Shown in pieces: positions 38,387-61,624 of a DNA stretch of 64,000 bases. This DNA is from Paraphysomonas bandaiensis. Its lineage: Eukaryota > Protista > Chrysophyceae. Both the position numbers and the translations under genes were made by a program. The stretch is from assembly GCA_965644295.1 (NCBI GenBank), contig CBFFRP010000091.1, forward strand, positions 104,345-168,344. Reading direction: 5' to 3'. Within the stretch, counting starts at the first letter, position 1. The number at the start of each line of letters is the position of its first letter. Below the pieces are notes generated by a model. The model searched no databases and had not been told where the DNA came from. It worked only from the letters and a program-made list of their open reading frames with translations.

Positions 38387-39847
38387 ATGTCTCTATTGAG
38401 ACTGTGGCTGAGTCACATCAGTGTGCCCAGGGCCTTTTACACTCCCTTACTGCTGCATTTTGTTGACCACCACGCTTCCGACAAATTACCTGTCACACCA
38501 TGTTGTACACGCTCCAAGCCCCCCTGCCTGGCCTTGCAACCTTCACCCTACTCAACTACTTCAGTTAAACCACGTGCCTGCACCAATGCAGCGCTGACCG
38601 CACCTACGTGCTATCCCCTCAGCAGACAACTTCGTCTCACCCATCGCTTTCTACGGCTACAACCTCTCAGAACATGGCTCGTGCGAGCAGGCTCACGAAA
38701 ACGACCCCCATGGACCCCCTATGCAATCACTGAATACTCTCGATCCCTCTCAACTGTGCAACAGGGCTGCCTTCTGCCGCCCACTCAACCCAACCCAACA
38801 TGGTTTGTCTGTGGTCCATCCACCCAGCAGGCTACCCCCTCACCCTGTTCACCTATCACCCCCACAGCCCATCCATCTCATTGGATAGACACTGTATTCC
38901 GCATACGGTATACTCGACTACTGTACTACTGTGTCCTACAGGATGTATACCATTCCGTGTATACCTCTACTGCTGTTGGACACATCACCATGTCCATGTA
39001 CCTGTCTACCTGTACTGTTGGACACATCACCATGTCCATGTACCTGTCTACCTGTACTGTTGGACACATCACCATGTCCATGTACCTGTCTACCTGTACT
39101 GTTGGACACATCACCAGCTCTCTCTCACTGTCCAACACACTCATAACACCACTGCAGTGTCATACACACACACAGTACACTCTACCTCCTCCTAGAAAAC
39201 CCCCAGACAAACTATCGCCTCTCCCTTACTGGGCGTACTGGTCCACCCACTATTCCTCCTTCCTTCCACAAACTCAATTCCTTCCATCTTATGATGTGTT
39301 TTGCTCCAACGATCACTTCTTCCTGGACACCAAATACCCGGTGGAGTTGGAACTACACGCGCTACTCGAGAGAATTCCTGACCTCGTCATCATGCGTCTC
39401 CAAAATGTGTTGCAATGTCATTCCAAGGGAATGCAAGGAGTCCACCGTGCCAGGTCCATCAACCATCCCTCCCACGCCCTTCAGGGGAAGGAATTCTCCT
39501 CCGATAACAGCGGTGACGGACCCAGCAAATCCACCCACACATTACCCTTACCCACTAAGGATGCCACCACACCGTATGCAACGTTATTTGACTATTTCCC
39601 AGTCAAACGGAAGCCCAGACCTCCACAACGCCGACGGCTTCGACAACTCTATCTACACCCGCGGCCCCACAGGAGCACAGTAACACATACTGCAAACCCA
39701 ACTCCTCCTCCCAACAATCCCCACCACTCCCAACCCACACATCTGGAACTAGGTGCACTCAGGACCCTAATTCAGAATGCTGAGCCCCCTACAAAACCAA
39801 TGGAGACACATCCCAAAGGGAGACCCCCAGATCAAAAGCGCCGGTGA
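38387..39847 (+). CDS. Orphan 486-aa Pro/Thr/His-rich ORF linked to a family-1 3' end (probably element-derived)
   Basis: 1461-nt open frame on a C/A-rich strand with an in-frame 42-bp repeat and RKPPD and GRPPD motifs. The family-1 tail starts about 45 nt after the stop. Confidence 0.4.
   Translation: MSLLRLWLSHISVPRAFYTPLLLHFVDHHASDKLPVTPCCTRSKPPCLALQPSPYSTTSVKPRACTNAALTAPTCYPLSRQLRLTHRFLRLQPLRTWLVRAGSRKRPPWTPYAITEYSRSLSTVQQGCLLPPTQPNPTWFVCGPSTQQATPSPCSPITPTAHPSHWIDTVFRIRYTRLLYYCVLQDVYHSVYTSTAVGHITMSMYLSTCTVGHITMSMYLSTCTVGHITMSMYLSTCTVGHITSSLSLSNTLITPLQCHTHTQYTLPPPRKPPDKLSPLPYWAYWSTHYSSFLPQTQFLPSYDVFCSNDHFFLDTKYPVELELHALLERIPDLVIMRLQNVLQCHSKGMQGVHRARSINHPSHALQGKEFSSDNSGDGPSKSTHTLPLPTKDATTPYATLFDYFPVKRKPRPPQRRRLRQLYLHPRPHRSTVTHTANPTPPPNNPHHSQPTHLELGALRTLIQNAEPPTKPMETHPKGRPPDQKRR
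38971..39116. repeat. 42-bp tandem repeat, about 3.5 copies (TVGHITMSMYLSTC)
   Basis: Unit tactgttggacacatcaccatgtccatgtacctgtctacctg starts at 38971, 39013, 39055 and 39097. Confidence 0.97.
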
Positions 39848-39891
39848 GTCCACGGACACACGATAAAGGCGAATTTCATATCACACAAAAA

Positions 39892-40082
39892 GAACGGAAG
39901 TGGTTGCACCTTGGTGCTTGCGGCGACGCACAAGCAGCTTTCGTAGCGTTAAATAGTAGGATAAAAGAGTTTGTATTGATTAGTTACGGGTAGTGGTCTA
40001 ACTAGTATGACTAGCATTCTTCTAGCCACTAATTGATGCAAGGTCTCAACGCCTATTGCTAAATAATCAGACATTCACTACT
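39892..40082 (+). mobile_element. Family-1 3' portion, copy F
   Basis: cggaagtggttgcaccttggtgcttgcggcgacgcacaagcagctttcgtagcgttaaatagtaggat ... cagacattcactact. Confidence 0.9.
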
Positions 40083-40429
40083 GAGTTAGTGTTGGTTATC
40101 ACAACTTCATGTAAACGATATTAATAAATCTATCTAGTCTTACGACAAATTCTCTCTGTGATCTAGCTTAAAATGAGCAATTTCCAACACCGTTTAACTA
40201 AGAGCGACTTAAAGTAACTGAAACTTGCTGTTGCCATCATTTAATGTCTACTTACTGCGTCTACCTATTGGATTGCCTGTCACAACGTATAAATTCCCAA
40301 AGTATTCTTATCATCATACGATTACTAAATGCTAATTATTCACTATTTATATACCCATACTCCAATTACAAATTCCGTATATTTCACGTTAAAATTAAAT
40401 ACAAATTCGTCAAGGAAACAACGTTCAAC

Positions 40430-41060
40430 CTACTCATTAATAGGCATTAGAAATGATGTGTGCGCTTTATATACCGAAGAAAGCTTCACTGAAGGAGACA
40501 AGGTTGAAAATCCTGACGTCCTGTAAGCATCATCGAGTGAATGCAGTCGACTGTAGACTCTCGAAATATCGAACAGGAGATAATACACAACCGGCAATCT
40601 AACTAATGCATCTTCTGCTGCACGGGCATGTGGTTTCAAGCATACGAGCAACACTTCGCTTCACACTGTGCTTACTTTAAGATAAACTGCACTTGCATTG
40701 GAGTGCTACAGCCGCCGCTGATGTGCTATTAGAAGTGGCAGGAATAGCAGCCCATTATGATCTCCTCTCTGTGCGTGTGTGTGTCTGTCTGTGACTGTGT
40801 GTGTGTCTATAGTATATCAGCTTTAACACCACACTTGACTGGTGATTCAAGCCAGGAGACATTAACAAGAGCCTGCAGAGACATTTACACGAGTGACTGC
40901 AATCAGTAGTAGCTGATAGACTCTGGCCGGCTATGTGCTACCAGCGTATCATCCATAGCATAGCTGGGTAGTGGAGTGCCTATCAGTATCAGTGACGAGG
41001 AGATCATCAGCTAATTCGCATACGCATCCAGCGGTCACTTCATTCAAAGTGAAGTGAAGT
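40430..41060 (-). ncRNA. Putative spliced non-coding snoRNA host transcript divergent from uL23m (ends approximate)
   Basis: Intron-like segments gtatgc...ctgcag (41023-40873) and gtaagc...gtgcag (40675-40618). No credible ORF. Occupies the position of the divergent partner found for every other gene. Confidence 0.5.
40899..41018 (-). ncRNA. Candidate intronic box C/D snoRNA
   Basis: Box C TGATGA (41009-41004), D' CTGA (40992-40989) and D CTGA (40906-40903). The guide ATCAGCTACTA next to box D pairs with LSU rRNA UAGUAGCUGGU (one G-U pair). Confidence 0.55.
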
Positions 41061-41336
41061 GAAGAAACACACTTCCAACAAGTGAAAATACACTACTGTA
41101 TACCTGGAATACAGACACGGCATACCACGACTGGTCAGTGTTTTTTCGTATGTATTTTTTTGTGAGGGTCCTGTGGATGACACCAGCATTAATACTGTGG
41201 GAGGTGAGGCGAGGTGAGGGGAGTGTGCTGGGCTAGAGCACATACACTAAGACTCAGACATTGTTATCTCCAGATATCAGCTTGTCGCCTACCATTAAAT
41301 TTGTTGATAGTATTTCTCACTCCGTTATTCTAAAAC

Positions 41337-41733
41337 ATGGTGAAGGTGTGGTTTCCGGACATGTATATGAGGCTGGTTGGAAGTAAGTGCCATTCATTAA
41401 TAATTTTATATGTAAATAATCGTAACACTGCAGAGAATTTATCCAGACCAGTCGGTAAGGCAGTGTTCTACGTCAAACCCAGCATGACCAAATGGGAAGT
41501 TCGTGAATATTTAACGAAAATCTATAACATGGATATATTGAAAGTTGAGACGGCACTGCATTTAGGTGCTGTTGTGACTGCTTGGGTTGTGTCATGTATA
41601 TTAACACGTCTCTTTTATAGGCCGATGGAAGAGATTTTATGGTAAGCGAGATGTTGTTGCATACAAACGAAGAAATTTCAAGAAGGCATACGTTGATTTC
41701 GTGAACTCTGTTCCCAAGGATTCGACAGCATGA
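41337..41733 (+). CDS. MRPL23: Mitochondrial ribosomal protein uL23m, 3 exons
   Basis: VWFPDMYMRLV, AVFYVKPSMTKWEVREYLTKIYNMDILKVET and GRWKR...FKKAYV. Stop at 41731-41733. Confidence 0.9.
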
Positions 41734-42404
41734 TTAAGTTAGTGTGGAAAGTTTGTATCGTTTTAGATTATTAACACTGACTATCATCTCAGGAATAAAG
41801 TGTAGACAAAAATGCACATATTAGTGAATAATGAAAGTACTAAGTGTTGTGACGATGTGAATTTGTGACTGTATACAGGATGCGCATTGGAGGTGTAGAA
41901 GATAGAAGTCACTAGCTTTCATTTACTCTTTTTCTTAACCGCGAGCAACGGTTTATATACTCCTACGTACGAAGCAGAGTATTCACTCATGTGCAACTGA
42001 AAAGGGTAGAACTCTTTATAGTAGCCTACTTTACACATTACGGCTCTTGCACCTAGCTACGAAAAACGAAATTATACAAATATACTATATATTATAATAA
42101 TATTAAGTGCTAGTTACGTTATATGTGTATTTCGTAGTGGTAGACTTGTAGCAAATGTTGTGTCCATTAAGTAAGTATCAAGTATTTGTAGCACTGCTTC
42201 TTTGCAACCAAGGTTGTTCGTGCCCAGCTCCACACTGTTTGAGTTTATACTACTCAACTACTCAATTTCTGTTCGTAGAAATCAGTACCAGAGCGTTATG
42301 TATTAGGGCAACATATTAATATGAAACTTCTGAATAAAGTGTGACGAGAATTCGTAAAACGAAACTCATGACGCAGCCACAAACGTTCTAATCAACCTTT
42401 ATAT

Positions 42405-43175
42405 CAGGGATCGGGAACAATATATTGCAATACTATTGTTAGAGAGCGTTCCATCAATAGTATTGATGGATTTTTTAAACCGGTCCTACAATACAATTAC
42501 AATATATTGCAATATATTGTCAATGTATTGCTATATATTAGTATGACTAATCAGTAGGTATACACATCCGTAGATTTCATTTTTAGTATTAGTCATTAAG
42601 ATCACATGACAACCAAACCAACTGCTGCTTATAGCTACTAAAAATCCACCTCGTCCTCATCCTCTGAGCCATCATCGGTGACGTCAACATCACCATATTC
42701 ATTCACAGAATTAATTGAAAAGTGCTAGTATCCGGTCATAACTGTCGAATAGCTTTATGAAACAACAGTATATTAAGTAGGATGGATACTTTTGGCAACA
42801 CTGATATAATATGTTTAGCTGTGCTGAACAGACGTTCCCATGTATTGGAAGTACATAGCAGGGCCAGGCAACCGTTAATGACTCGTGGATCTGCACGTTT
42901 CTTAATTTTTTGAGCTGACTGAAGATTTTTAGTCGCATAGTCAACATCAGCTTCATTATCCTTTGTAATGTTGTAATCAATTTCTCGGTTATTTATATCC
43001 ATTTTGCACCCTACAGTTGAGAATCTTCTCTTATATGACTATCATAATATTGATTGCAATATATTGCAATAGTATTGTGAGCTCTTTTAACAGAAACAGT
43101 ATTGATGGAATATTTGACCAGTCCACCAATCAATATATTTTACAATATATTACAATATATTGTTCCCTATCCCTG
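42405..43175 (-). mobile_element. Non-autonomous hAT element with perfect TSD
   Basis: TIRs cagggatcgggaacaatatattg / caatatattgttccctatccctg. 8-bp TSD ctttatat on both sides. Remnant CTSNTWERLFSTAKHII. Confidence 0.95.
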
Positions 43176-43378
43176 CTTTATATTCGCATTTTAATCTCTT
43201 TCTATCTGATTACAGTGCGCACTAACCCACAATCAACAACACCACGTTGACAGTAAAAGGACAAGAAATGATATACTCCACGTCCGTGTGATAAAAAAGA
43301 ATACAAAATATATATCTAATTAATACAAATTGTACAAATAATAAGTAATAAAGAAAACTTTAAATATAAAATTCGAAA

Positions 43379-44632
43379 CTACCACGTTAGTTGTTCAAGC
43401 TCTGCATTGCTAATCGACTTATCTCTTGGGGGTCTATACAAAATATCCAAATCGAGCAACACATCATCTAGCATCATACTGGCCTCAATTATAAGTCCTG
43501 CTGCGTCCTTATCAATGTTGTTTCCCATTAGGCTAAGACCCTTTAAGATAGTATTCTGCAAAATCCCCTTCGCAAGATAGCGAGCGCCCGTGCTATCGAT
43601 GCTGTTCAGCTGAAGTCTAGCCACAAGTACACCATCAGTTCATAGGAAAATATAGCAAACTGAAATACCCAATATATGCCACACTGCGATTCTTCTCGAA
43701 GGCTTGAGCTAACCATCTCGCGCCATCATTTCCAATTTGGTTTGAGTGCATACTGATATGAGCGATCTTTTTATTTCGGGCCAGCAAGTTCCCAATGACC
43801 TTTGTACCTTCATCACCTATCATGTTATCGTCCAGCACAAGAGCAGCAAGAGAATTGTCGTTCTGGAGGGCGTTGCATAGCACACTTGCACATTCCACAT
43901 CAACGCCACTGTTACTGAGACTAACACAAAAATATCAACATTGACATATATTAAGCATTGGTAGCGTATTTACTCGAGAAGCTTTAGTTCACTACGTTTA
44001 TTGTCGCTGATAGCGTTGGCGATATGAGATATCCCGGGCGCACCAAGGGCATTCCCTGCAATGCTGATACAATTCGATTACCAAGAAACAAATAAACAAG
44101 ACAATATTACTTCAAATTTGTCAGTGATCTATTTACTTTTAGTCCTTTTGAGAGCTCAAGAGCTCCATCTGAAGATATTTTACACTTCCTTAAACTGTCA
44201 CCATGGTGACAAAAGACCAACCAGAGGTAATCATATGCGATCGTACCTGAGAGAACGAAGAGATGACTGGCCTGTAAGTAGCTCGCCTATAACAGTACAC
44301 CCTGGTATTGCAAGAAAGTTTTGATCCAAGTTTAACGTTTTCAGTACCCTGCTCGATGCAAGAGCGCTACCTAGAGCAGATATACCATCTGAATCATAAT
44401 TCCCTTCTCCCCTTGAATTTACACCACAGATATGATTTCCAGATAAATCAATCTCAACCAGAGGAGATTGTCCCCCCCCAGGTCGACCGGCTCCAAATTG
44501 TTGAATGCATTTCGAAACCGTTACAAGATCTTGTGGTCCGACGAAACCGTTCGATAAGTCCAAACAGTCAATAGTGTCTTGTTCTCCGCGCAATTTTCGG
44601 CATAATACAGGAGTAACGGTGCTCTGGTACAT
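43379..44632 (-). CDS. RNI-like leucine-rich repeat protein, multi-exon
   Basis: Repeated L..L.L..N.IG..G...LA..L motifs. ATG at 44632. GT-AG introns. Confidence 0.88.
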
Positions 44633-55926: not shown

Positions 55927-57109
55927 TTAATATTTTGTGGTAGCCCCAGTGGCTTCTAGGATCTCATATAGCTTTTTCTCTTCCGGATCCATAGCTTTCC
56001 AGCGCATTCCTAAGTACTTGCCCATTGTCCGTTGCATATCTCCACACTTCAGACCAGCGAGAAATAAACGCTCCTACAATTCAGTCTAATTATGACAATA
56101 TCGTGCATGACATACAAAATGGATACCCACCTGATGGGCAAACAAACTGTACGCAGTTCTCGGACGCATTACTTTAGGAGCTCCAGCAGATGTAGTATCA
56201 CCAGACTCAGTATCCACTTTCTTCCGCCTTCCACGTCTTTTCTTCACCACACCCGCTTCAAACAAATTCTCAGCTTGGGACTTTGACGGGCTCTGAAGAG
56301 ACTTCGATGGCTGCCCGTCGAGTCCGTAACCCGGTGGCGGGTCAATTCTGCATAATACCATACATTATGATTGATCAACTACATTGCATATGGTGCCTTA
56401 CTTGGGCACAATGCTTCCCCCATGAAAGGTGTTGTAGACGTGAAGTTCCTGTAGGTATCTTATCTTATCGTTATGCGCCTTCTTCAGGAATACAGCCTTC
56501 TTGTTCTTGGGAAGGTCTCGCCAAAGCTTGCCGATAATCTTATTCACTTCATTGTTTGCAAGATGCTTCAAAACACATGTCACATAACACACTGATAAGG
56601 AGATTGATAGGCTTACAGCGAACTCATGAGACATAGTGGCCCGCACCCGTATGGCGAAGAAGTTAAACCCGCTGACATATCCCTTTGGCTCTCTCACCTA
56701 TATATGTATGAGCCCCACGTATGATATGTGTACGTGTGTGTACGTGTGTATGTGTACGTGTGTATGTGTACGTGTGTATGTGTGCATGTATGTATATACG
56801 GGTCAGAGGGCTCTGGTGGTAGGGAGCACTTACATGCTTGAATGATCCCTCACTGGCAAAGGTGGACGGCGGCAGAGCAAGAGCCTCTGATTTGAATGCA
56901 GCGGAAACATCCAACAGACTCAACTGCTCGTCCGTGTCTGCTGCTCGCGAGGTACTGTCAGGCCTGTCTGTTGCATTGCCCTCTATACCATGAGAGAGCT
57001 TATCAGGGGACACGCTTGCAATGGAAATCTCTTGCTTCACTGAGGAGAGAGAGTGGAGTGACAGGGGCGGGGTCATGGGCAGGCTAATGGGGGCTGCTGT
57101 GGTTATCAT
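55927..57109 (-). CDS. Dual HMG-box protein, copy 1, 5 exons
   Basis: PKGYVSGFNFF...NNEVNKIIGKLWRDL...DKIRYLQEL and PRTAYSLF...MGKYLGMRWKAMDPEEKKLYE, with a basic KKRRGRRKK linker. Confidence 0.9.
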
Positions 57110-57526
57110 CCTTGTATTGAGCACAATCCAACCTTTGGAGTGGTGTTTAACTAGAAATATGTGTAGAGGCACAAAACTGATTAAGTATGAAAATCTATGC
57201 TTTTGGGCCCAAGGTCTTATTTTCCAGGATATCATAGTGCAGGTACGAGCAGCAGATAAGATACGTACGACTTATGTGCGTATGTAGGGGTGTGATATCT
57301 AGATATGCGTAGAGTATGGAGCAGCTGTCGTTGTACTTCTGCAAGACCACTCCACACACAAGAAGCACAGTGCATAAGTACATCTCCTGCAGTACGGTGA
57401 AGACGTACAGATCAAGATGTTATGATCTCAGCATGATCTCCACACATACATGCATATCGAGAAGAACCCCGGGCGGGCCTGTACCGCATAACCAACAGCA
57501 TAACCCCGTCAAGTAACCTCCTCTCG

Positions 57527-58156
57527 ATGTATCTTCTTCCTCTATCATTAGGTCTATTATCTGTGTGTGTTGTTGATGGTTTGTCTGTGTCTGTTAAGCC
57601 GGGGTCCATGGAGTGCTTCATAGTAACTGCATCCACTGGAACACACTGCTTTGGTAGCTTTCAGATACTCTCCTCTGACCCAGAGCCAATATCAATCACA
57701 GTAGTGGGTCCTGCCCCTGCTCATACCATGTATCACGAGTCACGATACAGAGGCACTGGAGCTATAGACACAGATGAGACAGAGGGCTCCTTTGCTTTCG
57801 ATGCTGACCTGGAGGGGGATTATAACCTTTGCATAAGCAATGGAAACCCACAAAATCACGATGGTCATGAGAAGTTAGTTGCTTTCAACTTTAGGACTGT
57901 GGATAGCACGGGGGATACTGATTATGAGTTCGCAAGTCTCCAGTCAGACCTCTTGGAACTGCAAAAAGGACTCACTTTTCTTAAGGACCATCAAAGCTTT
58001 ATGAATCAGCGTGAAGATGTTCATAAAACTACATTAGAAAGTACGAATGTTAAAGTGTTGTGTTGGACTGTTGTGGAAGCAGTGATATTGGTAGGAATGA
58101 TGCTGTGGCAACTGACATACATCAGTAAATTTTTTGAAACTAAGAGAAAACTGTGA
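57527..58156 (+). CDS. p24/emp24/GOLD cargo receptor, copy 1
   Basis: Signal peptide, GOLD Cys pair (ECF, YNLCISN), coiled coil, TM helix and FFETKRKL tail. Confidence 0.95.
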   Translation: MYLLPLSLGLLSVCVVDGLSVSVKPGSMECFIVTASTGTHCFGSFQILSSDPEPISITVVGPAPAHTMYHESRYRGTGAIDTDETEGSFAFDADLEGDYNLCISNGNPQNHDGHEKLVAFNFRTVDSTGDTDYEFASLQSDLLELQKGLTFLKDHQSFMNQREDVHKTTLESTNVKVLCWTVVEAVILVGMMLWQLTYISKFFETKRKL

Positions 58157-59408: not shown

Positions 59409-60577
59409 TTAATATTTTGTGGTAGCCCCAGTGGCTTCTAGGATCTCATATAGCTTTTTCTCTTCCGGATCCATAGCTTTCCAGCGCATTCCTAAGTACT
59501 TGCCCATTGTCCGTTGCATATCTCCACACTTCAGACCAGCGAGAAATAAACGCTCCTACAATTCAGTCTAATTATGACAATATCGTGCACGACATACAAA
59601 ACGGATACCCACCTGATGGGCAAACAAACTGTACGCAGTTCTCGGACGCATTACTTTAGGAGCTCCAGCAGATGTAGTATCACCAGACTCAGTATCCACT
59701 TTCTTCCGCCTTCCACGTCTTTTCTTCACCACACCCGCTTCAAACAAATTCTCAGCTTGGGACTTTGACGGGCTCTGAAGAGACTTCGATGGCTGCCCGT
59801 CGAGTCCGTAACCCGGTGGCGGGTCAATTCTGCATAATACCATACATTATGATTGATCAACTACATTGCATATGGTGCCTTACTTGGGCACAATGCTTCC
59901 CCCATGAAAGGTGTTGTAGACGTGAAGTTCCTGTAGGTATCTTATTTTATCGTTATGCGCCTTCTTCAGGAATACAGCCTTCTTGTTCTTGGGAAGGTCT
60001 CGCCAAAGCTTGCCGATAATCTTATTCACTTCATTGTTTGCAAGATGCTTCAAAACACATGTCACATAACACACTGATAAGGAGATTGATAGGCTTACAG
60101 CGAACTCATGAGACATAGTGGCCCGCACCCGTATGGCGAAGAAGTTAAACCCGCTGACATATCCCTTTGGCTCTCTCACCTATATATGTATAAGCCCCAC
60201 GTATGATATGTGTACGTGTGTGTACGTGTGTATGTGTACGTGTGTATGTGTGCATGTATGTATATACGGGTCAGAGGGCTCTGGTGGTAGGGAGCACTTA
60301 CATGCTTGAATGATCCCTCACTGGCAAAGGTGGACGGCGGCAGAGCAAGAGCCTCTGATTTGAATGCAGCGGAAACATCCAACAGACTCAACTGCTCGTC
60401 CGTGTCTGCTGCTCGCGAGGTACTGTCAGGCCTGTCTGTTGCATTGCCCTCTATACCATGAGAGAGCTTATCAGGGGACACGCTTGCAATGGAAATCTCT
60501 TGCTTCACTGAGGAGAGAGAGTGGAGTGACAGGGGCGGGGTCATGGGCAGGCTAATGGGGGCTGCTGTGGTTATCAT
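59409..60577 (-). CDS. Dual HMG-box protein, copy 2
   Basis: Same exon structure as copy 1. The differences I saw are intronic or synonymous. Confidence 0.9.
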
Positions 60578-60994
60578 CCTTGTATTGAGCACAATCCAAC
60601 CTTTGGAGTGGTGTTTAACTAGAAATATGTGTAGAGGCACAAAACTGATTAAGTATGAAAATCTATGCTTTTGGGCCCAAGGTCTTATTTTCCAGGATAT
60701 CATAGTGCAGGTACGAGCAGCAGATAAGATACGTACGACTTATGTGCGTATGTAGGGGTGTGATATCTAGATATGCGTAGAGTATGGAGCAGCTGTCGTT
60801 GTACTTCTGCAAGACCACTCCACACACAAGAAGCACAGTGCATAAGTACATCTCCTGCAGTACGGTGAAGACGTACAGATCAAGATGTTATGATCTCAGC
60901 ATGATCTCCACACATACATGCATATCGAGAAGAACCCCGGGCGGGCCTGTACCGCATAACCAACAGCATAACCCCGTCAAGTAACCTCCTCTCG

Positions 60995-61624
60995 ATGTAT
61001 CTTCTTCCTCTATCATTAGGTCTATTATCTGTGTGTGTTGTTGATGGTTTGTCTGTGTCTGTTAAGCCGGGGTCCATGGAGTGCTTCATAGTAACTGCAT
61101 CCACTGGAACACACTGCTTTGGTAGCTTTCAGATACTCTCCTCTGACCCAGAGCCAATATCAATCACAGTAGTGGGTCCTGCCCCTGCTCATACCATGTA
61201 TCACGAGTCACGATACAGAGGCACTGGAGCTATAGACACAGATGAGACAGAGGGCTCCTTTGCTTTCGATGCTGACCTGGAGGGGGATTATAACCTTTGC
61301 ATAAGCAATGGAAACCCACAAAATCACGATGGTCATGAGAAGTTAGTTGCTTTCAACTTTAGGACTGTGGATAGCACGGGGGATACTGATTATGAGTTCG
61401 CAAGTCTCCAGTCAGACCTCTTGGAACTGCAAAAAGGACTCACTTTTCTTAAGGACCATCAAAGCTTTATGAATCAGCGTGAAGATGTTCATAAAACTAC
61501 ATTAGAAAGTACGAATGTTAAAGTGTTGTGTTGGACTGTTGTGGAAGCAGTGATATTGGTAGGAATGATGCTGTGGCAACTGACATACATCAGTAAATTT
61601 TTTGAAACTAAGAGAAAACTGTGA
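60995..61624 (+). CDS. p24/emp24/GOLD cargo receptor, copy 2
   Basis: Translated protein identical to copy 1. Confidence 0.95.
   Translation: MYLLPLSLGLLSVCVVDGLSVSVKPGSMECFIVTASTGTHCFGSFQILSSDPEPISITVVGPAPAHTMYHESRYRGTGAIDTDETEGSFAFDADLEGDYNLCISNGNPQNHDGHEKLVAFNFRTVDSTGDTDYEFASLQSDLLELQKGLTFLKDHQSFMNQREDVHKTTLESTNVKVLCWTVVEAVILVGMMLWQLTYISKFFETKRKL

Follow-up and report, generated by a model that had tools for sequence, protein, structure and literature searches.

Analysis of a 64,000-nucleotide stretch of DNA from Paraphysomonas bandaiensis (hereafter "the window") suggests that a short locus on its minus strand is probably a single-copy box C/D snoRNA gene, which would guide the modification of the LSU rRNA adenosine homologous to Am945 of Arabidopsis. 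This assignment draws on the sequence motifs, on a guide that pairs with rRNA of the same organism and whose target is the counterpart of a nucleotide 2'-O-methylated (Nm) in plants, on the single-copy state of the locus, on the transcription of the region, and on the use of box C/D snoRNAs by the same genome, which carries U24 and U14 arrays. According to the model we propose, Paraphysomonas (a colourless chrysophyte, i.e. a stramenopile, living as a marine flagellate) would make a box C/D snoRNA of ~107-115 nt, whose boxes C and D would form a kink-turn with fibrillarin, Nop56, Nop58 and Snu13, and whose 11 nt preceding box D would pair with the LSU segment UAGUAGCUGGU and direct the 2'-O-methylation of its second A. 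The snoRNA would occupy the 5' portion of a ~680-nt non-coding transcript, from which it would be excised; ~225 bp would separate the start of this transcript from the 5' end of the opposite-strand gene coding for the mitochondrial ribosomal protein uL23m. We infer the minus-strand transcript, the stable small RNA and the methylated A from the evidence laid out below. The elements of the candidate, read along the minus strand, are as follows:

40873..41023, minus strand, 151 nt: GT...AG segment, from GTATGC (starting at 41023) to CTGCAG (ending at 40873); an intron proposed from the sequence, with no splicing observed
40903..41009, minus strand, 107 nt: core of the predicted box C/D snoRNA, from box C to box D
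41004..41009, minus strand: box C, TGATGA (exact), with C at the preceding position instead of the consensus purine
40992-40989, minus strand: box D', CTGA, 11 nt past box C
40986-40983, minus strand: second CTGA, following TA (the sequence CTGATA occurs twice)
40949..40954, minus strand: C'-like box GGATGA, agreeing with TGATGA in 5 of 6 positions, 42 nt before box D
40907..40917, minus strand, 11 nt: D guide ATCAGCTACTA, pairing with the LSU rRNA of the organism over 11 bp (one G-U)
40903..40906, minus strand: box D, CTGA (exact)

Box C/D snoRNAs are characterized by a box C (consensus RUGAUGA) close to the 5' end and a box D (CUGA) close to the 3' end. In the candidate all four boxes are present in the canonical order (C, D', C', D), and boxes C and D agree with the consensus save for the C in place of the purine in front of box C, a deviation against which the initial annotation had already cautioned and which is indeed there in the sequence. 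The internal pair consists of CUGA and GGAUGA, and the spacing between C' and D is long. Box D is followed by 30 further nt up to the closing CTGCAG. The whole minus-strand segment, with its GT-AG ends, boxes and guide, reads exactly as it had been written down initially, and it is present in a single copy in the 62.6-Mb assembly. In agreement with Paraphysomonas as the source of the DNA, a protein encoded 7 kb from the locus shares 100% identity with an MMETSP transcript, and an MMETSP1103 entry (taxon id 36769) belongs to its 90% cluster.

The guide was compared with the organism's own rRNA by means of a snoscan-like script. LSU rDNA with CATCTAGTAGCTGGTTCC is found on two contigs of the assembly (G000:C525 and C543), and the guide forms an uninterrupted 11-bp duplex with TAGTAGCTGGT that includes a single G-U pair. 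The antisense element directly abuts box D and, with its 11 nt, exceeds the usual minimum of 10 nt; the 5th guide nucleotide, counted upstream from box D, is opposite the second A of UAGUAGC, which places the predicted Nm at G000:C543:85 and C525:10186. The pairing originally proposed (an 11-nt guide with one G-U, aimed at the second A of UAGU-A-GC) is therefore confirmed against the LSU rRNA of the same organism.

By its sequence context, the predicted target is the exact homolog of A945 in Arabidopsis 25S rRNA, which reads CCAUCUAGU-A945-GCUGGUUCC, with G943, U944, A945, G946 and C947 lying within CCAUCUAGUAGCUGGUUCC (PMC8053127). In Arabidopsis this nucleotide is 2'-O-methylated, with a RiboMeth-seq score of 0.94-0.96 and SnoR12 (Z44) as the guide, and mutants with lowered SnoR12.2 show a reduced score of 0.73-0.76 (PMC8053127). 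A second laboratory also lists 25S Am945, with AtsnoR12-1a/1b as the guides and with the human and yeast columns empty, and equates Arabidopsis Am826 and Gm917 with yeast A817 and G908, i.e. with an offset of +9 (PMC8583080). As the offset is +9 at these neighboring sites, the target corresponds to yeast A936. Both statements of the initial annotation about the site thus prove correct: the site lies where it had been placed, near yeast 25S A936, and the equivalent A is methylated in plants, as Am945 in two RiboMeth-seq studies of Arabidopsis (PMC8053127, PMC8583080). The Dictyostelium map has no Nm in the interval that corresponds to yeast A649-A1133 (PMC8817022). Another assignment of the target, to yeast A817/human A1521 (the site of snR60 and SNORD77/80), was rejected on the basis of the per-nucleotide numbering of Arabidopsis 25S rRNA. 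Counting from seven known yeast sites likewise spoke against the A817 assignment.

The rDNA of this assembly is badly fragmented, with pieces at G000:C525:9694-10351, C543:1-578, C545:1-2110, C516:511-1052 and on C653. The LSU piece on C525 (positions 669-1451 of the Rfam model, including the target site) directly adjoins the region that lies 99 nt before the SSU, and on C545 just 2110 nt of LSU represent model positions 1-2949, with the 18-nt target motif missing; such fragments may be due either to misassembly or to rearranged rDNA copies. Further SSU rRNA-like matches, either partial or with lower scores, were found on G000:C188, C196 (~104 kb), C551, C437, C68 (~177 kb) and C669, and these could represent divergent or degenerate rDNA, organellar rRNA, or insertions.

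Motifs as short as those of box C/D snoRNAs have to be judged against chance. The window contains five CTGA sites with an 11-nt guide to rRNA, among which only the candidate has TGATGA 50-160 nt upstream. In the null model of 400 first-order Markov windows of 64 kb, a guide with box D occurs on average 5.2 times per window, and the additional presence of box C lowers the mean to 0.23; the trio of box C, guide and box D is found in 20% of the random windows and is therefore not significant. When box D' (9-20 nt past box C) and a C'-like box are also demanded, the mean drops to 0.005 per window, i.e. the full box constellation is rare, as judged with filter criteria that were set after the candidate had been seen. 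A scan of metagenome contigs for box C, a gap of 60-90 nt, the guide and box D returned 117 matches (92 of them unique), nearly all in coding sequences or bacterial noise, and D' together with C' accompanies the pattern in 2 of the 92 unique matches (about 2%), both of them inside long ORFs. Arabidopsis has 111 Nm sites, which amount to about 2% of its rRNA positions; multiplication of the rate of 0.005 per window by this 2% leads to the expectation of ~0.1 such chance candidates directed at a documented site in the whole genome. The 13-mer comprising the guide core and box D occurs once in the 62.6-Mb genome, and its reversed control does not occur at all.

These counts bear on the most serious rival explanation, according to which the constellation arose by chance within a promoter-associated divergent ncRNA of uL23m, or within a plus-strand lncRNA, and no snoRNP is formed. 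Such an explanation would account for the frequency of the simple trio, both in the random windows and among the metagenome matches with their predominance of coding sequences, and it would agree with the weak terminal stem, the orphan D' guide, the lack of an Rfam match and of a detected homolog (all discussed below), as well as with a transcript whose strand is not readable from the contigs. It is at odds with the sharp reduction in rate that D' and C' bring about, both in the simulation and empirically, with the uniqueness of the 13-mer, and with the +5 rule pointing to a nucleotide that is methylated in Arabidopsis, which contributes a further factor of ~0.02. On balance, we regard a chance origin as unlikely, albeit as an explanation to be reckoned with, and favor the snoRNA gene.

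Several features nonetheless weaken the snoRNA assignment. Instead of a terminal stem of 4-5 bp, the sequences beside the boxes can form 2 bp (GC/GC) with a UU bulge, and an alternative stem, UGCG/UGCA, has 4 bp including one G-U, is asymmetric and is located 7 nt from box C; whether one counts the 2 bp or the asymmetric 4 bp, the weakness of the stem conceded in the initial annotation stands. Many intronic animal snoRNAs are devoid of a terminal stem, and this feature is not strictly required. Box C is paired elsewhere in the MFE fold, and the fold of the candidate is no more stable than that of shuffled sequence (z = -0.83). The comparison with Rfam that had been suggested for the locus turned out negative: no snoRNA family was matched in the whole window at the gathering thresholds, or in the region 40600-41300 even at E<=10.

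For the D' guide we found no convincing target in rRNA, U6 or U2. Its matches comprise only 7-10 bp, at sites not known to be methylated, so the lack of a D' target acknowledged at the outset remains a valid reservation. In 18S rRNA it pairs over 7 bp at AACG*AGG, a position that probably corresponds to yeast Gm1572. In LSU rRNA it pairs over 10 bp (one G-U) at AUUA*GUGACG, which is not a known Nm site and which lies a few nt from a conserved one, presumably that of yeast A2220. The D' matches are no better than expected from several registers and ~5.8 kb of targets. The stretch before the second CTGA (40983-41003) includes 8 nt perfectly complementary to positions 47-54 of U2 snRNA (UAUCAGUG), the gene of which is located at G000:C8:31929-32113; under the +5 rule the target would be A51, a position not known to carry an Nm in U2 of Arabidopsis.

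One could imagine an RNA of a different kind, i.e. an orphan C/D-like RNA acting via the D' guide, or a regulator of the uL23m promoter, for which the match to LSU rRNA would be incidental. The perfect 8-bp match to U2 and the 7-bp match to 18S rRNA could be read in this way, as could the 225-bp intergenic region common to the locus and uL23m. Yet with several registers and targets of this total length chance alone should produce matches of 7-8 bp, the predicted nucleotides are neither known Nm sites in Arabidopsis U2 nor supported in more than one lineage, and the 11-bp pairing of the D guide is far stronger. We consider an RNA of this kind very improbable and return to the LSU-directed snoRNA.

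Its genomic neighborhood and the evidence for transcription involve the following features:

40354..41030, strand not assigned, 677 nt: transcribed unit, represented by one RNA contig of depth 44 from the culture run X1
40856..40901, minus strand: two imperfect tandem units of 22-24 nt, each starting with TGCAG, which begin 1 nt past box D
41255..41859, plus strand: divergent gene of the mitochondrial ribosomal protein uL23m, from its ORF, with the ATG at 41337
41383-41433 (51 nt) and 41563-41617 (55 nt), plus strand: introns of uL23m, spliced in four runs

We surveyed the region 39900-42400 in four public RNA runs, all of them in the form of assembled contigs, from which RNA ends, strand and level are unreadable. 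The X1 contig is 699 nt long, gapless and unspliced across 41030-40354, and it differs from the window solely in that the 22-nt unit 40856-40877 is present once more, inserted behind 40855; this additional copy may represent either a strain polymorphism or a repeat collapsed in the assembly. In a polyA metatranscriptome, coverage is confined to 40388-40602 and 40623-40860, with a depth of 3-6. The depth in X1 falls to zero in the flanks 40236-40319 and 41076-41243, so its coverage reflects a transcript and not DNA background. In each of the four runs the uL23m introns, which lie 300 nt from the locus, have been spliced out; this indicates that the runs are RNA and that they contain the organism. 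No convincing ORF was found in the transcribed region, and the candidate lies ~20 nt from one end of the transcribed unit.

The initial annotation described the candidate as intronic, and it is this part of the proposal that the RNA data fail to support. Were 41023-40873 spliced from a non-coding host RNA and then trimmed, the candidate would be an intron-encoded snoRNA, i.e. a special case of the preferred explanation. The ends of the segment carry consensus splice sites, GTATGC...CTGCAG, which resemble those of the local introns (the uL23m introns end with CTGCAG and TATAG), and the U14 unit of the same genome likewise has GTATGC upstream and CAG ~31 nt past box D. The segment was also rightly called long for this window, being 3x the length of the confirmed introns of neighboring uL23m. 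In contrast, the sole contig over the segment is unspliced and starts 7 nt upstream of the GT, none of the four runs has contigs over 41031-41243, where exon 1 is expected, and the flanking exons are not seen joined in mature RNA: the 41024/40872 joint is absent from all four contig runs, in every one of which the uL23m introns are spliced, although a minor spliced isoform could be missed, or lost when the contigs were assembled. In addition, the proposed 3' splice site is located within the 22-nt unit 40856-40877, of which the strain used for the RNA run has one more copy, and is thus not a fixed landmark. We consider an intronic origin rather doubtful. Provided that the snoRNA is real, the available RNA contig data favor release from an unspliced precursor, which we regard as the likely route, and excision from a GT-AG intron would be the considerably less probable one. 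Under the preferred interpretation, the snoRNA would reside in a non-coding transcript divergent from uL23m.

At positions 39880-40083 of the window (extending to about 40235), we found a dispersed ~203-nt repeat, which the genome contains in no fewer than 40 copies that are 100% identical (2889 candidates at first look). It is often located at the starts of contigs, with one copy beside the 3' end of the LSU on C516, and matches no Rfam family. The RNA depth over this repeat is ~6x10^5 in X1, as compared to ~1.2x10^3 for uL23m, and it is represented by hundreds of variant RNA contigs, many with internal "skips" that end at 40062. Elsewhere in the window there is a tandem duplication of ~3.5 kb (56663-58156 and 60176-61624), which contains an identical plus-strand ORF of 209 aa with a signal-peptide-like start and a C-terminal membrane segment, reminiscent of p24/emp24, as well as a minus-strand ORF of 175-190 aa.

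Searches for conservation of the candidate were carried out along several lines. Among the 117 pattern matches in the metagenome contigs no homolog was identified; three look-alikes around box D (L079, L122 and L132) were rejected, as they correspond to a protein-coding exon. A blastn comparison of the region 39000-43500 with all retrieved loci gave no match. Synteny was followed with exon 2 of uL23m alone as the query, which recovered four relatives with 62-73% identity (the Pfam domain Ribosomal_L23, PF00276, is present in relatives of this exon), two of the contigs being too short, and the guide is absent upstream of uL23m in the three distant relatives with usable upstream DNA. Synteny via a metallophosphoesterase 7 kb away was discarded, its nearest relative being 53% identical and having other neighbors. 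As the relatives are distant, the missing homologs are an absence of support and not a refutation. A literature search on SnoR12/Z44 and on stramenopile snoRNA maps returned nothing useful. One metagenome contig (Ga0078894_10098960; L040:2262-2355, minus strand) contains a 94-nt element with box C, box D and a guide CCAGCTACTA to the same LSU site. This element is flanked by a perfect 5-bp stem (GCGAT/ATCGC), lies in AT-rich, apparently non-coding sequence and has no match in Rfam; it may be a functional analog in another eukaryote.

Among known systems, the closest counterpart of the candidate is the Arabidopsis box C/D snoRNA SnoR12 (Z44; AtsnoR12-1a, -1b and -2), which guides 25S Am945 and Am2127. 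The two belong to the same class and share a predicted target, which in the invariant LSU domain II segment UAGUAGCUGG is the second A. No Rfam family matches the candidate; moreover, SnoR12 has a second guide (for A2127), whereas for the D' guide of the candidate no comparable LSU match was found and the best matches are elsewhere, and SnoR12 is part of a polycistronic cluster with U24, whereas the candidate stands alone. The relationship between the two may be one of either orthology or convergence. A more far-reaching scenario combines several steps: the candidate would be a true ortholog of SnoR12, Am945 would be ancestral to Archaeplastida and stramenopiles and lost in opisthokonts and Amoebozoa, and an unspliced polyadenylated ncRNA, driven by a bidirectional promoter shared with the mitoribosomal gene, would yield the guide from its 5' end. 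Taken as a whole, we find this scenario quite improbable.

Within the genome of P. bandaiensis itself, the candidate can be compared with two arrays of box C/D snoRNAs:

G000:C375:105-8580: U24 in tandem, with a 300-nt period and 29 or more identical copies (53 bits)
G000:C434:87990-102345: a U14-like snoRNA in tandem, with a period of ~255 nt and 55 or more copies (50 bits; Rfam cut-off 64)

The U14 unit resembles the candidate not only in the GTATGC and CAG that bracket it, but also in its length of 113 nt and its non-coding surroundings. Both U24 and U14 have clean terminal stems, of 5 bp and 4 bp, respectively, in contrast to the weak stem of the candidate, and both match Rfam families and are 30-60 fold amplified, whereas the candidate is single copy and matches no family.

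With regard to the mode of expression, independently transcribed snoRNA genes of yeast and plants produce Pol II precursors that are 3'-extended and polyadenylated. The candidate resembles them in its position near the end of an unspliced RNA of ~680 nt in polyA-type libraries, as far as contig data can tell. The mammalian genes GAS5 and SNHG are non-coding hosts of snoRNAs, and the transcript described here is similar to them in that it has no convincing ORF and in that the candidate is bounded by GT...AG. It differs from them in that no spliced form has been seen and that it carries one snoRNA-like element only.

If the candidate is real, it enlarges by one guide RNA the snoRNA repertoire of chrysophytes, about which almost nothing is known. 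As a single-copy gene it contrasts with the snoRNA genes that this genome carries in amplified tandem arrays. It would represent an ordinary class of RNA in an unstudied lineage, and no concept of snoRNA action is altered by it. It does lead to the prediction that an rRNA methylation documented only in plants would also be present in a stramenopile, and this prediction for the equivalent of Am945 bears on the age of rRNA modifications that are considered "lineage-specific".
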